This document shows, in pieces, positions 18,635-25,744 of a stretch of 64,000 bases of DNA. The DNA is from Oikopleura dioica (taxonomy: Eukaryota; Animalia; Chordata). The notes beneath the pieces are model-generated. The model searched no databases and was not told the origin of the DNA. It saw only the letters and a program-made list of their open reading frames with translations. How positions within the stretch are numbered: the stretch's first letter is position 1; each line of letters starts with the position of its first letter. A program made the translations under genes and the position numbers. The stretch lies in the NCBI GenBank assembly GCA_907165135.1, contig OU015567.1:2232001-2296000 (forward strand), written 5' to 3'.

Positions 18635-20544
18635 TCAGTAAGTTTCAAGTCTAATTGTTCCTTCAGTATTTTCTCCAATAGAGTAACCCTTATCGAAATA
18701 TCCGAGAAATTGGTATTTTATCCTGACGACAGCGTCTGATCCAAGTTTAAAGTCGATTTTTGGCTCGACCTAGAGATAAAATTAAGAATAGCAAGCTCTT
18801 GATTTCGAAGAAAGAGGAAGTTAAGAAATACCTGAACAGACCAGGTATGCATGACTTTTGAAAAAGCATAAGTCACCCACGTGTTCGTTGTTTTTGGCGC
18901 TTTGAAAGTCGCCAAGTGTTTTGATTTGTTTTCCTTGTCATTCGCGAAGAATGAGAATTGTCGGACTTTGCATGTTTCGTCCGTTAGAAAGGAGATTCTG
19001 ATCCTCACTCCGGTCAGAAAGGACGGCTGAATCATGTGACTTGTTCGGTGATTGTCTACCGTTCTTCTTTTGTAGATTCCTGTGTCGAGGTCGAGATCTT
19101 CGCCGAGGTTGACTTGATCGCCGAGGATTTCTAGCGAGCACTTCATGAATAAGCTGCCTTTCAGAAAGATCCGTATTCCCATTCCCTTGAAGAAGGATGG
19201 GCAAATTCTTTTTCAAAATTTCTTAGCCAATCAGGCCCTAGTTTTTGTCGTCTAAGCCAATCAAAAGACAGTTTTCCTTTGATTGGATAATCAAGAAAAT
19301 AGTGCCTTCTGATTGGTCAAAGAACCAATTTTCCCAACCCGTCCCTTGATCGGATAAGGCAGAGCCACGAGTTGCGTTGTCGCAACTCTAGAATTTCCAA
19401 CCAGCCATCTTCCGTCATAATAATTCTTTCTCGCGCAAGAAAGATCGTAGAACTCAATTTTTACATCTTTTATCAGGCATAGTTTTTCGTAGTGCTCTCC
19501 TTTCTCAGAGCTAAAGAAATGCAGAAGCGCTCTAGAAACGATGTTTTACCGTAACAGCAAGCCGCGGACGACAAAGGGCTTTTGAAAATCGACTTCTACA
19601 AAGGGCTCCGGGTCATCAACAAGCTCGGGTTGCCACGTTGAATAATCCAGCCTCGGTAGATCTCCGCCTCTGCCGCTAGAAAGCCCGAACTGCCGGTCTT
19701 TCACCACTGCCGGATCGGACAAACCTAGTGGTTCGCCAAACATAGTCGCCATCAATCTCAATTGCTGTCTTTTCTGCCTCTCTCGAAGTCGGCTTTCATT
19801 CAAACTCGTTTCCATTTTCGCCAGAAATTCGGAGAAACTCGCGATTCTATTTGAAAGATCAGCGGTTTGGGAAGCGATTTTGTCGAAATTTTCTTTCTGA
19901 ATCTTCTCAAATCGGCGAGTTTGGCTTTCAAAAATGTCAACGAAGCGTTTTTCTATCTCCAAACTTCACCAGAATAAAAATTTTCAACCGAGAAAAAAAT
20001 CCTATTCTGAAACTTTTTTGAAAGCAGCTGCGCGCGTTTCCGCCTGAGACTGGACCTCGAAAATGACTTGTTTGATATCTTTGAATTTTTCTGCAGTTTT
20101 CGCCGCTTGAATTTCGATTTCTTCTGATCCCGGGATTTCTGTGAGCTCTTCTGGAGCGACCAAGCTTTCTTTTAGATTGTTTTTCATGTGCTCTAGTTTT
20201 GCGCTCTTTTTACTGAGTTCGAGAATTTCCAATCGTCAAAAGAGGTTATCACAACTCGATTCCTGAACTTCGATTTGATTCAGTACGCCCTCGATAATAT
20301 TGGTAAACGGCTCCTTTTCATGAGCATACGCTGTTTTGAGGGTCGTCCCTGATGAAAACTCGGAATCTTCCGATTTTGTTTCGATTGTTTCATTATTATC
20401 GCTTTCTTCAGGACTATCTGGATCTCTCAGAACTGACAAATTTAGCTTCGTGTCGATTTCAAAATTATCACTATTCATTTTATTTGAGCTAATTCTTCCG
20501 AAACAAATTTTTCTGATAATGTTTTTTATTCGTCTTGACTTCAA
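18635..20544 (-). CDS. Protein with acidic N-terminus, coiled coil and F5/8 type C (discoidin)-like domain(s), multi-exon
   Basis: PLGLSDPAVVKDRQFGLSS...WQPE...PFVEVDFQKPFVVRGLL and later QGNGNTDLSERQLIHEVLAR match the F5/8C pattern. Heptad-rich exons at 19750-20232. No signal peptide seen. Confidence 0.65.
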
Positions 20545-20971: not shown

Positions 20972-23619
20972 TTAGAAATTGCGAACATTGTGTTTTGGCG
21001 TAAGAGTTACTGAGTATGCTTGAGGAAGAAGATACCATGTTTCTTCTTTCATTTTGTTGACGTGTTCATTAGTAAGTGTTAAAAACTCTCCCTTGTCTCC
21101 GTAATAAATATAATCATAAAAACAGTTGTGGCATTCTTCCATCATTCTGTTACTTGCGTAATATGGTCTTTTGAGAGGGATTCTTATTTGAGAAGAAGAA
21201 TGAGCGATCAAAGTATTTTGAAGAATATATTCGGAGTATTCGACTCGGTCAAGTACCATTTGGTGAAAAATTAAACTTCCGTCGGTGTTGAGAAATGTGC
21301 CGGTAACCACCAAGGGACGTTGAAAGGTGAATTTTTCGTGAAGCAGAACTTTCGAATAAATAATTAATTCCTAAAAAGATAAAACAACCTTTTTGAAAGT
21401 CAAACTCAGATTTTGTACGTAGAGTATCAATGTGCAAAATATCCCATCCACTTTTATGAAAAAATGTTTCAAATTTGAGTCTCTTCAGAAGCATTTCAAT
21501 ATCATTATCCTGGAATTCTTGCTCTTCCATTTTCGGATTTAGAGTAAATCCAGCCAAACTTCGAGGGAAAATGATCATCGTCAGAACTATGAGAATGTTT
21601 TCAAGAGTATAATCATCATTCATTCTTTTATCATTAACTTTCAAATCATTCTTGATCGCCCATCTCAAAATGACGCTGACTGAAATTGGAACACAGAGAT
21701 TGCTTCCTTTCTGATCGAGAACATTTTGAGTAACATTTGTAAACTCGTTTTTCATGGTTCTCTTGAATCGCTGTTTTAAATTCGCCATTGCAGAGGATTT
21801 TGTCAAATTCGGATCATCAAAAGAGGAAAATGACGTTTTTTTGAGAGAGATAATTTTGGTCAGCTTTGAGACTTCTTTTTCGTGATCTTCACCGTAGCTT
21901 GGGTTAACCCAATATTCATCAAAATATTCGTCCTAATTATGGCGATTACAAAAATTATAATTAAAAATTTTTAACAGCAGAAATAACGACATGTCAATTG
22001 TTTGTGCTCAAGAGAAAAAACGATACACTTAAATATATTTTACTTAGGAAAATTTTTCTAGAAAATGACGTCATTTTTTTTAGGCAATCTTTCCGATGAA
22101 TTTTCGTTATTTAAAATGGGTCAAATAGAAGCTAATATAGAAGAAATCTTGCGAAAAGAATATTTAAATTGGCTCAAAATTCGCTCAATATGGCCCTTTT
22201 TGCTATCTTATCAGATCATTTTTGGTGTCGTCGGTTGTTGTTTTTTGCATAATTTTAACCATGAAAATCGGTATAATCTAAGCTTTTGAGCGGAAAAAAA
22301 GATTGGTCAATTCTGTGCTGCAAGTTTTTCTTTATTTCATCTAAATGATTGCAATTTTCAATTATGTTTTACCTCGTTTATTTTCTTTCTGATATTTTCT
22401 TTTTCTTCTGTCGTTAAAGGATTATAAAGAACACTCCATGCAGTTTTCCAGTCGCAAATAATCAAAACATGTAAATTTGTCAAAAAACCACCACTGCCTT
22501 CGCAAAGTTGGCTGATACTAGAAAATCCTGCAGAACCAGCGCCTGTTCGAAAGCAAAAATAAGATAAACTATAAATTTTAAGGTTTAACTTACGTAGAGA
22601 ATGAACATCTTCGTACTTGCATCCTTTCCTTGCATAGCCCATTTCACAATAACTTATTCTCATTGATTCGTTAGTTACGATGCCGAAATCAGTCCATTTT
22701 GGCTTTCCATTTTTAAGAAGGATATTTTCAGGTTTTCTGTCCATATGATGGATATAGATTTCCGTCAAATACTTGTATCCCTCCGAGACGCCTATTGATA
22801 TTAATTTTCTTTCGTCCAGACTCAAATCCTCATTCTTGAGCCTTATTCTCAAATCAGAATCACATTTTTCCATGATTGTTATCCATCCTAGACAGTCTTC
22901 CTTTTTTTCATCTTCTTTTAAAAATATTTGAATATTGCAGAAATTTTTTATAACATTTTCGTGTGATGGAATTGCCCTTGGTATAATATGAAACTTGTTT
23001 TTCTCGGAGTTAATTTTTTCAGCAATTTCATAATCTAAATTTCAGGTTCTAGTAAATAATAAAAACGGAAAAAACCTTTTGAAAGATGAATATAAAAGAA
23101 AAGATCCTGTTTCGCTGCAAAAAGTGCTGGATCAAAACATTGAACTCGAACAACGACTTTCAGTTCTCCAAATATCTCTTGAAAGACAATTGCTTCTCCA
23201 CCAACAGAAAGGATCTTCTCCTCGAAAGAACGACCAAGTGTCCATTCGCCGAATTCTTCTTGCAATTCTGATCGTAGAATTGTCTTATTTTTAAAATCAG
23301 GATTTCGCTCAAGAATTATTTTCTGCAATTCAGTAACGGTCCATCGTAAGCCCCCGAGGTCGGCTGACTCACACTCCTGGCCAGGAAAAAAGACTTGCCC
23401 TTCCTCGTCTCGGAAAATAATCTTGTCCCACCCAGTGTATATATTCTGCAATGACCCATTGATCGCGATCTTGAAATCTTCATGTATCCTGTCAACTGAT
23501 AAAATCAATCTGTCTAAATCATTACGACTTGTCCATCTTTCTAGTTTTCTCGTGAAACATCCAAGCCATTTCTTCACGCTCTCTTTTGTCAATTCGTCTG
23601 GATGCAATGGTATTTTCAT
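20972..23619 (-). CDS. Atypical protein kinase followed by a papain-fold cysteine-peptidase-like domain (one gene or two; linker splicing unresolved)
   Basis: Kinase: ILSVGGEAIVF, VVVRVQ, HENVI, IMEKCD, HHMDRKPENILL, WTDFG (22358-23619). Peptidase-like: DQKGSNLCVPIS and FHQMVLDRVEYSEYILQNT (20972-21950), joined by a GT-AG intron near 21350-21390. Confidence 0.65.
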
Positions 23620-24602: not shown

Positions 24603-25744
24603 AATGCCGAGAGCGACTGAAACGACCGATTCTTATGCTACCATGCGCCCATAATCTTTGCCAAAAATGTGCCCAGAATATTTTCGACAACAAAGGTTTT
24701 CCAACGAGTCAACATGTATCAACCCTTTTCCATAGCAATCGTGATGCGAAATGCTCGTAGCGATCGTCACAAAATCAGATGTCCCTGTTGCCGAAAAGAA
24801 GTCGTCCTTGACATGCATGGAATTCATGGACTAACGCGAAATCTCGTCATTGAGCAATTTATCGAAACTTTCGAAAAGCATGAGAAACTGTAATTTTACC
24901 CTTCATCCTCCTTTCTACCATTTTTCTCTAGAAAAAAATCAGGCAAAACTCTTCCTCCACCCCGATCACGAAAAACAGTAGCGCTGAAGTACATCCCTCC
25001 AAGCTGCAAAACTCACAAGAACCAGAAGCTGAACATCTACTGTAACGACTGTTCTGAACTCACATGCACTTTGTGCAAGTGCTTCGGAGCTCATAAAAAC
25101 TGCCACGTGACTGTCGTCAAGGACTCATTTCAACTCGAAAAAGAAGAGCTCGAAAAAAGCTTGGACAGATCGAAAAATATTCTCAAAGAACTTAGGTTCG
25201 AGTTTCTCAAATTTCAAAAAAAAAGGGAGTTTTAGGGAAATTTGCAAACTGTACGAAGAAGCGCTCAAAACATCGAGAAATCTACAGCTCTCGGAGAATC
25301 AGAGGATTCTTAATGCTTTTCATGAGATTTTCGAGATTCTAGAGAAGCGGAAAAAAGCTTTGCTGAAGTCCATTGACAAGTAAATATTCGTTTTATGATT
25401 GGTCAAAGCAAAGCATGTTGCATTTTGATTGGTTCAAGGGGCAAAATTTTCATTTTAGCGAAGCCAAGTCCAAGTTGACCAACTTGGACAACAACTTGGA
25501 ACAATACGGCGAAATCCTCTCCTCACAGACTGAAATTCTCACCGAAAGTTCTCGAATCAGCGGCGCCAAAAACTGGGTCGGCTTCATTTTCCGCGTCAAA
25601 AACGATCTCATCCCCAAGATCGACAAATTCTGCGACCGGCGAGAGCAAGTTATGACATTGAAAAAAGTTCCATTCAACGAGGATTCGTGGAAATTAAATG
25701 TAGAGCCTGTTCTTTCTTTGATCAATAAAATCGACTTTGAATAG
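24603..25744 (+). CDS. MuRF-like (TRIM54/55/63-type) RING-B-box-coiled-coil E3 ligase, multi-exon; 5' end unresolved
   Basis: PILMLPCAHNLCQKCAQNIF, RCPCCRKEVVLDMHGIHGLTRNLVIEQFI, B-box CKTHKNQKLNIYCNDCSELTCTLCKCFGAHKNC, then coiled-coil exons. Confidence 0.85.

Follow-up and report, generated by a model that had tools for sequence, protein, structure and literature searches.

An arginine-type kinase joined to a predicted papain-fold peptidase in an expanded Oikopleura dioica gene family

Nucleotide binding and dimerisation of a kinase fold switch on a C-terminal KEN nuclease in IRE1 and RNase L. Exchange of the beta-3 Lys of a kinase for Arg is a classic kinase-dead substitution; mammalian KSR carries it with the rest of the catalytic loop kept, and KSR-type proteins are reported to bind nucleotide without efficient transfer. 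For a papain-like domain and a kinase in one chain, the only precedent that we found in the literature is the plant EDR1/CTR1-type Raf-like kinases, which contain a papain-like EDR1 domain (PF14381) (PMC10318531). Here we describe a gene of the larvacean Oikopleura dioica that pairs a kinase with a predicted papain-fold domain. It lies on the minus strand at 20972-23619 of a 64,000-nucleotide stretch of the genome (G000:C5:2232001-2296000; hereafter the window, to which positions refer unless a contig or locus is named). Analysis of its reading frame and splice sites gave five exons, 2073 nucleotides (nt) and 691 codons, with no in-frame stop in any exon. A literature search found no paper describing the family to which it belongs.

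The product would be a single chain made up of an N-terminal region of about 135 residues, a kinase domain with Arg at the beta-3 position, and a C-terminal, two-lobed papain-fold peptidase with a Gln-Cys-His-Asn active site. An initial annotation of the window, made from the sequence alone, had proposed a kinase-protease fusion of this kind. We favour a single-chain protein that joins an atypical kinase to a papain-fold peptidase, and we put this reading as a whole, in which control of the peptidase by the kinase is the least certain part, at roughly 75 %.

Active site and predicted fold of the C-terminal domain

The C-terminal domain of the window gene contains the Gln, Cys, His and Asn codons that the initial annotation had named as peptidase residues, and both papain spacings are matched: six residues from Gln to Cys and sixteen from His to Asn (Table 1). 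We tallied these positions over non-identical family sequences from loci in the same genome, metagenome loci and database proteins. Gln was kept in 200 of 203 sequences, Cys in 197 of 204 (the remaining seven have Ser), His in 129 of 131 (the other two have Phe) and the Asn sixteen residues past His in 119 of 126. The annotation had also named poor conservation of Cys, His and Asn among paralogs as a sign that would speak against a peptidase, and this was not seen. Two further positions were kept to a similar degree: the Gln after His (130/131) and an Asp five residues past it (124/130). Median column conservation was 67 % in the first peptidase half and 55 % in the second, where 14 of 143 and 12 of 115 columns, respectively, were at least 95 % conserved. 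With 94-99 % conservation at the Gln, Cys, His and Asn positions, against 55-67 % for the median column, the pattern is not a product of chance. The four residues hold in the most divergent paralogs.

The predicted nucleophile is the only invariant Cys of the domain, and about 130 residues separate it from the His. Judged by its spacing, the Asn is the likely equivalent of the third catalytic residue in papain and C39 enzymes. The Asp shares a strand with the His, but at an odd offset; it therefore probably points the other way and is more likely structural. Conserved YPRS, NLNP and SGW motifs are present in exon 4; together with an RP..TG motif and a Trp late in the domain, these near-invariant positions probably give the active-site cleft its form.

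Across both peptidase exons, the ratio of nonsynonymous to synonymous substitution rates (dN/dS) between the window copy and its eight closest paralogs was 0.12-0.28, at a synonymous divergence (dS) of 1.2-2.5. The family copies are old duplicates under purifying selection, and the window gene is an intact member kept by selection. Some copies, a minority, may instead be decaying or encode pseudo-enzymes. Two copies depart from the residue pattern and also carry other degenerate changes: in L033 (L033:1318-2037:+) the Cys is Ser, and in L027 (L027:3329-3598:+) the His is Phe and the Asp is Glu.

Sequence comparison did not place the domain in a described family. Pfam searches with the four exon open reading frames (ORFs), six relatives and 14 alignment members, at E values up to 1 or 10, returned nothing for it; up to E 10 there was no match to C1 (PF00112), C39 (PF03412), EDR1 (PF14381) or the transglutaminase families. 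When PDB sequences were searched with single exons and with a profile, no match to this domain rose above chance. Its language-model neighbours include clusters of C1 peptidases.

Structure prediction pointed in the same direction as the residues. We rebuilt the alignment from spliced database models, with about 30 rows spanning both peptidase halves, and AlphaFold2 then modelled the paralog P0120 with a mean predicted local distance difference test score (pLDDT) of 79.7 (78.6-79.7 over five models) and a predicted template modelling score (pTM) of 0.73. In this model Cys77 opens a helix (77-93), His207 lies in a strand (204-215) and Asn223 follows just after another (218-222). A VIA-align comparison with 48,161 PDB representatives gave 56 chains with Z of at least 5 and 12 with Z of at least 8. 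Among the best 50 of the 56 rows, nearly all are named papain-type peptidases, and the alignments span residues 70-297 and hence both lobes. Der p 1 came first (Z 9.8; 152 residues aligned, root-mean-square deviation 3.6), followed by xylellain (9.6), Der f 1 (9.1), cathepsin B (8.8), PCAT1 (8.2), ComA (8.1), falcipain-3 (8.1), cathepsin C (8.0) and ATG4A (8.0). Staphopain, IdeS, UfSP, ZUFSP, streptopain and coronavirus PLP2 appeared in lower rows. Those without "peptidase" in the title were CdiA-CT, P210 lyase, CtaG, YopQ and Alr0975. Since a best Z of 7-8 is typical in this comparison for models that match nothing, the weight of the fold evidence lies in the uniformity of the list and in the coverage of two lobes, and not in Z by itself.

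On the model, the alignments begin at residue 71 or 72, which is paired with residues 29 of Der f 1, 24 of cathepsin B, 45 of falcipain-3 and 228 of cathepsin C; we take these to be at or next to the oxyanion Gln of those enzymes. Read indirectly, from these ranges, Gln71 and Cys77 seem to be in register with the catalytic residues of papain-type enzymes. The marks of clan CA in fold and residue order are thus found together in the family: the order Gln-Cys-His-Asn/Asp, a Cys at the N-terminus of a helix and, in the P0120 model, a nucleophile helix packed on an antiparallel beta-sheet lobe. The papain-like fold that the initial annotation had proposed to look for by structure prediction was therefore found in a paralog model, and we regard a papain fold with an intact active site as highly probable. 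With fold and residue order in place and no matching Pfam family, the domain is best treated as a new family of clan CA. Foldseek against the viral library BFVD gave no significant match, and hence no support for a viral origin.

What chemistry the domain performs is a separate question, to which our answer leans towards genuine peptidase or isopeptidase activity. The domain could instead be an active Cys-His enzyme of papain fold whose chemistry is other than peptide-bond hydrolysis. The fold hosts transglutaminase, deamidase, amidase and acyltransferase activities, and plant EDR1, the kinase-linked precedent, belongs to the transglutaminase-like group (PMC10318531); a structure search cannot separate these chemistries. 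However, the best structural matches are true peptidases of C1, C39, C47 and C54, and the Gln six residues before Cys is kept, whereas the cluster of transglutaminases, deamidases and acetyltransferases mostly lacks the oxyanion-hole residue (PMC10318531). Together with the lack of a Pfam match to EDR1 or transglutaminase families noted above, these points make such other chemistry unlikely.

We consider it very unlikely that the domain has a papain fold but is a dead enzyme, kept as a binding or scaffold module for the kinase. Papain-fold pseudo-enzymes do exist, and one of them, the Ser-type SERA5, is among the structural matches; the seven Ser-bearing sequences and the few copies without His are also in keeping with such a role. 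A scaffold, however, would not need the whole catalytic set, and all four catalytic positions rank in the top 10 % of columns by conservation. The window copy itself has all four residues and evolves under the constraint described above. We therefore retain the C-terminal domain as a candidate working enzyme.

The kinase domain and its fusion to the peptidase

The kinase motifs that the initial annotation had read from the sequence, namely SVGGEA, VVVRVQ with its Arg, HMDRKPEN and an intact DFG, are all present at the codons it gave (Table 1). Exon 2 matched the Pfam Pkinase family (PF00069) with 33.7 bits (gathering cut-off 31.7; E 3.3e-8), and the paralog L016 did so with 44.8 bits. A profile search of PDB sequences retrieved DAPK1, KIT, MAPKAPK2 and B-Raf, and because all four scored near E 5e-7 the kinase has no close subfamily. 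The N-terminal region of about 135 residues had neither a Pfam match nor a language-model lead.

Over about 126 family copies, the residues of the catalytic loop H-x-D-x-K-x-x-N were kept in 98-100 %: the Asp in 124/126, the Lys two residues later in 126/126 and the Asn in 125/127. The Asp of DFG was kept in 124/126 and the Trp of DxW in 110/110. In contrast to these catalytic residues, the beta-3 Lys of the kinase superfamily is absent. With the strand assigned by motif and spacing, its place was taken by Arg in all 47 copies sampled (23 of them from metagenomes) and by Lys in none. Of the Arg and HMD variants, whose conservation among paralogs the initial annotation had proposed to check, the Arg and the Asp of HMD are thus kept, whereas the position of the "R" of HRD varies freely across the family. 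This free variation marks the kinase as non-RD. In the family alignment the glutamate of APE has given way to another residue (G-x-P-G-F...Q), and the part that follows helix F is short.

We take the domain to be an atypical, non-RD kinase of Ser/Thr type. Its predicted metal- and phosphate-binding residues are kept and the ATP-anchoring Lys is systematically swapped, from which we infer that it either binds nucleotide without efficient transfer or uses an unusual mechanism.

The fusion of the two domains is real in the family. In the paralogs L015 and L016, the N-terminus, the kinase and the Cys-bearing half of the peptidase lie in single open frames of 669 and 655 residues, which answers the question, raised with the initial annotation, of whether both domains occur in one ORF among paralogs. 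Nine public Oikopleura gene models of 692-719 residues show the full architecture, and 25 database proteins hold both peptidase halves, correctly spliced. For the window copy, the fusion is predicted from an uninterrupted gene model with four canonical introns, all with GT..AG ends. The linker at 21950-22358, which the annotation could not splice and which had left the fusion unproven in this allele, is accounted for by the 440-nt phase-0 intron (22372-21933).

The other junctions are consistent with this model. The translations of exons 1 and 2 align side by side to spliced database models across intron 1. The junction over intron 4, ..FEK-V-LLH.., is the family junction both in spliced database models and in paralogs that lack the intron. 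Intron 3 is single-copy in the genome and has no notable repeats. A repeat or mobile insertion at this place was considered and is ruled out, as the DNA is single-copy.

That the window allele instead holds two separate genes, with a terminator and a promoter in the 440-nt gap and kinase-only and peptidase-only products, is highly improbable. In favour of it, intron 3 has about ten times the length of the other introns, and public databases do contain peptidase-only models (for example P0120, P0117 and P0108). The gap, however, has canonical ends, is in phase 0 on both sides and falls exactly at the place of a short in-frame intron across which the frames of L015 and L016 stay open. No ATG precedes the conserved linker in exon 4, whose first Met lies 48 codons in. 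The peptidase-only models resemble truncated annotations, because in P0101 and at the metagenome locus L044 a kinase lies immediately upstream of a close P0120 homologue.

Table 1. Exons, introns and sequence motifs of the kinase-peptidase gene (positions in the window)
Feature	Position	Strand	Details
Exon 1	23076..23619	-	544 nt; ATG at 23619; N-terminal region of about 135 residues and kinase N-lobe
Gly-rich loop SVGGEA	starts at codon 23208	-	exon 1
Beta-3 strand VVVRVQ	Arg codon CGA 23148-23146	-	exon 1; Arg where kinases normally have Lys
Intron 1	23035..23075	-	41 nt; GT..AG; phase 1; junction codon GAT
Exon 2	22594..23034	-	441 nt; kinase helix C through activation segment
Catalytic loop HMDRKPEN	Asp 22741-22739; Asn 22726-22724	-	exon 2
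DFG Asp	22690-22688	-	exon 2
Intron 2	22543..22593	-	51 nt; GTAAGT..ACAG; phase 1; junction codon CGC
Exon 3	22373..22542	-	170 nt; kinase C-lobe remnant
AGSAGF	exon 3	-	occupies the place of the APE region
CDWKTAW	exon 3	-	corresponds to the DxWSxG motif of helix F
Intron 3	21933..22372	-	440 nt; GTAAAA..TTAG; phase 0 on both sides
Exon 4	21389..21932	-	544 nt; linker and predicted helical half of papain-fold domain
DQKGSNLCVPIS	Gln CAG 21713-21711; Cys TGT 21695-21693	-	exon 4; oxyanion-type Gln and predicted nucleophile Cys
Intron 4	21349..21388	-	40 nt; GTTG..AAAG; phase 1; junction codon GTT (Val)
Exon 5	20972..21348	-	374 nt coding (21348-20975), then stop TAA 20974-20972; predicted beta-sheet half of papain-fold domain
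FHQMVLDRVEYSEYILQNT	His CAC 21265-21263; Asn AAT 21217-21215	-	exon 5
Invariant Asp (His+5)	21250-21248	-	exon 5

Family size, distribution and genomic surroundings

The family is greatly expanded in Oikopleura dioica. In the 64.3 Mb, 19-contig assembly that contains the window, we found at least 135 matches to exon 4 and at least 123 to exon 5, spread over all four large contigs; both figures are minimum numbers of matches and not copy numbers. Dense clusters lie on contig C1 (about 5.5-6.0 Mb and 15.4-16.6 Mb) and on C2 (about 11.6-12.7 Mb). An exhaustive HMMER search of 1.84 billion representative proteins returned 63 matches, mostly fragments; those that we looked up and that carry a name are all from Oikopleura dioica, and the rest are metagenome fragments. 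We set one weak HMMER match, the repeat protein P0061, aside as unrelated. A word-index search yielded 67 proteins, and those among them that carry a name likewise all come from Oikopleura dioica. Public relatives are entered as "unnamed protein product" (for example CBY13560.1/E4XV29 and CBY31701.1). A scan of Joint Genome Institute (JGI) metagenomes added 80 marine contigs at 32-99 % identity, with an Arg-type kinase wherever a kinase was visible.

Several loci show features of their own. L015 (G000:C4:3227500-3234500) and L021 (G000:C4:3282500-3289500), about 55 kb apart, are identical over most of the kinase-peptidase ORF. Each also has as its neighbour an EGF-like gene with a long Thr-rich tract, identical between the two loci, and this points to a recent segmental duplication. 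The open frame of L021 ends earlier than that of L015, at 574 against 669 residues. On the small contig C16, locus L009 (G000:C16:1092-4733) has the same scores as L010 (G000:C1:5968337-5971978) in both exon searches, and C16 probably represents either a haplotig that was left unmerged or a duplicate of very recent origin. At L017 (G000:C1:16135000-16141500) the open frame lacks the Gln-Cys segment. This locus is flanked by a DDE_1 transposase ORF (Pfam E 1.3e-7) and by a 375-residue ORF of no assigned kind, and from the transposase neighbour it follows that at least part of the C1 cluster lies in transposon-rich DNA.

We note two groups of ORFs on either side of the window gene. At 24635-24893 on the plus strand, two short ORFs in different frames resemble exons of a RING-finger gene, possibly of the MuRF/TRIM type; the first has sub-threshold Pfam RING matches (zf-C3HC4_3, E 5e-4) and the second has a CPCC motif. 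Just downstream of the gene, at 19546-20544 on the minus strand, several ORFs look like exons of another gene; they are coiled-coil-like, and their Pfam matches are at chance level only.

Proposed control of the peptidase and comparison with known systems

The N-terminus of the protein is hydrophilic and is followed by the kinase. We infer a cytosolic protein because a signal peptide, a prodomain and conserved disulfide cysteines, the features of secreted C1A enzymes, are all absent. In our proposal, the C-terminal domain would be a working intracellular thiol (iso)peptidase, the kinase domain would bind nucleotide, and it would control the peptidase through autophosphorylation or through nucleotide-driven pairing of chains (dimerisation), by analogy with IRE1 and RNase L. 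We regard this control step as less likely than not.

Several observations weigh against a kinase-controlled papain-fold peptidase. As to the fold, a first AlphaFold2 model, of the paralog L013, reached a pTM of only 0.50 and found no whole-fold match by Foldseek or VIA-align, a failure that we attribute to an alignment with few rows spanning both halves. Foldseek alone gave no significant match in the PDB for the domain; its best weak rows were PCAT1 (E 0.025), AvrPphB, ComA and staphopain. The VIA-align Z scores of 8-10 stand only moderately above the background, and the fold was modelled on the paralogs P0120 and L013 and not on the product of the window gene. Within the predicted active site, the Cys-His and His-Asn geometry is read from secondary-structure positions and not from coordinates, and the invariant Asp five residues past His competes with Asn as the candidate third catalytic residue. 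As to the kinase, the Lys-to-Arg exchange means that the domain may only bind nucleotide, or not even that, and its C-lobe past helix F looks short. The regulatory coupling is drawn purely by analogy.

A large, clustered and diverged set of copies hints at a conflict-type role, as in immunity, cell death or gamete recognition. One could go on to picture a chordate-lineage invention, a single-chain protease switch gated by nucleotide or phosphorylation, whose more than 100 diverged and clustered copies would act within cells as sensors and executioners, be it in immunity, in cell death or in the recognition of gametes or of self and non-self. We regard this extension as doubtful. If true, it would supply a protease counterpart to IRE1 and RNase L, or to immune receptors that are fused to kinases, and the ever-present beta-3 Arg would mark a kinase fold that senses nucleotide and does not phosphorylate. 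Independently of that extension, the family fills more than 100 loci in one of the smallest chordate genomes, is under purifying selection and has named public relatives in Oikopleura dioica alone. Being so large and so narrowly distributed, it likely matters for larvacean biology. Oikopleura is an experimentally tractable animal in which its function can be approached, and the kinase half, with its catalytic loop kept and Arg at the place of the ATP-anchoring Lys, offers a natural test case for the role of "half-dead" kinases.

Among described peptidases, the closest are the papain C1 enzymes of MEROPS clan CA (cathepsins, Der p 1 and xylellain). They are the best structural matches (Z 9.8-8.0, with 145-158 residues aligned over both lobes) and share the residue order, the spacings of 6 and 16 and the Cys at the N-terminus of the core helix. 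In contrast to them, the present domain has no PF00112 match even at E 10, lacks their signal peptide, prodomain and disulfide cysteines, and is fused behind a kinase. The C39 peptidases PCAT1 and ComA align over 125-127 of about 135-150 residues (Z 8.1-8.2), and PCAT1 was the top weak Foldseek match. C39 enzymes have the same Gln(-6)Cys and His(+16)Asp spacing, and like the present domain they are cytosolic modules attached to another enzyme. They are, however, compact, bacterial and N-terminal on ABC transporters, whereas the present domain is twice as large, eukaryotic and C-terminal to a kinase, with Asn in place of Asp and no PF03412 match.

The comparison with kinase-linked systems is one of architecture. 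In plant EDR1 proteins the papain-like domain comes first and the kinase last, an order that is reversed here, and the kinase is of a different type. The EDR1 domain, moreover, belongs to a transglutaminase-like group near C71/C93 and not to the canonical papain group (PMC10318531), and the present family has no PF14381 match. IRE1 and RNase L resemble the Oikopleura protein in layout, with a kinase-fold domain and, directly behind it in the same cytosolic chain, a hydrolytic effector; the effector here would be a papain-fold peptidase and not a KEN ribonuclease, and we claim no homology. With KSR the protein shares the Arg at beta-3, and B-Raf-type kinases are among its weak profile matches; KSR, however, has no peptidase domain, and the sequence relation is not a specific one, as DAPK1, KIT and MAPKAPK2 score equally. 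Both building blocks of the Oikopleura protein are thus well known, whereas their pairing, a kinase with a papain-fold peptidase, is not.

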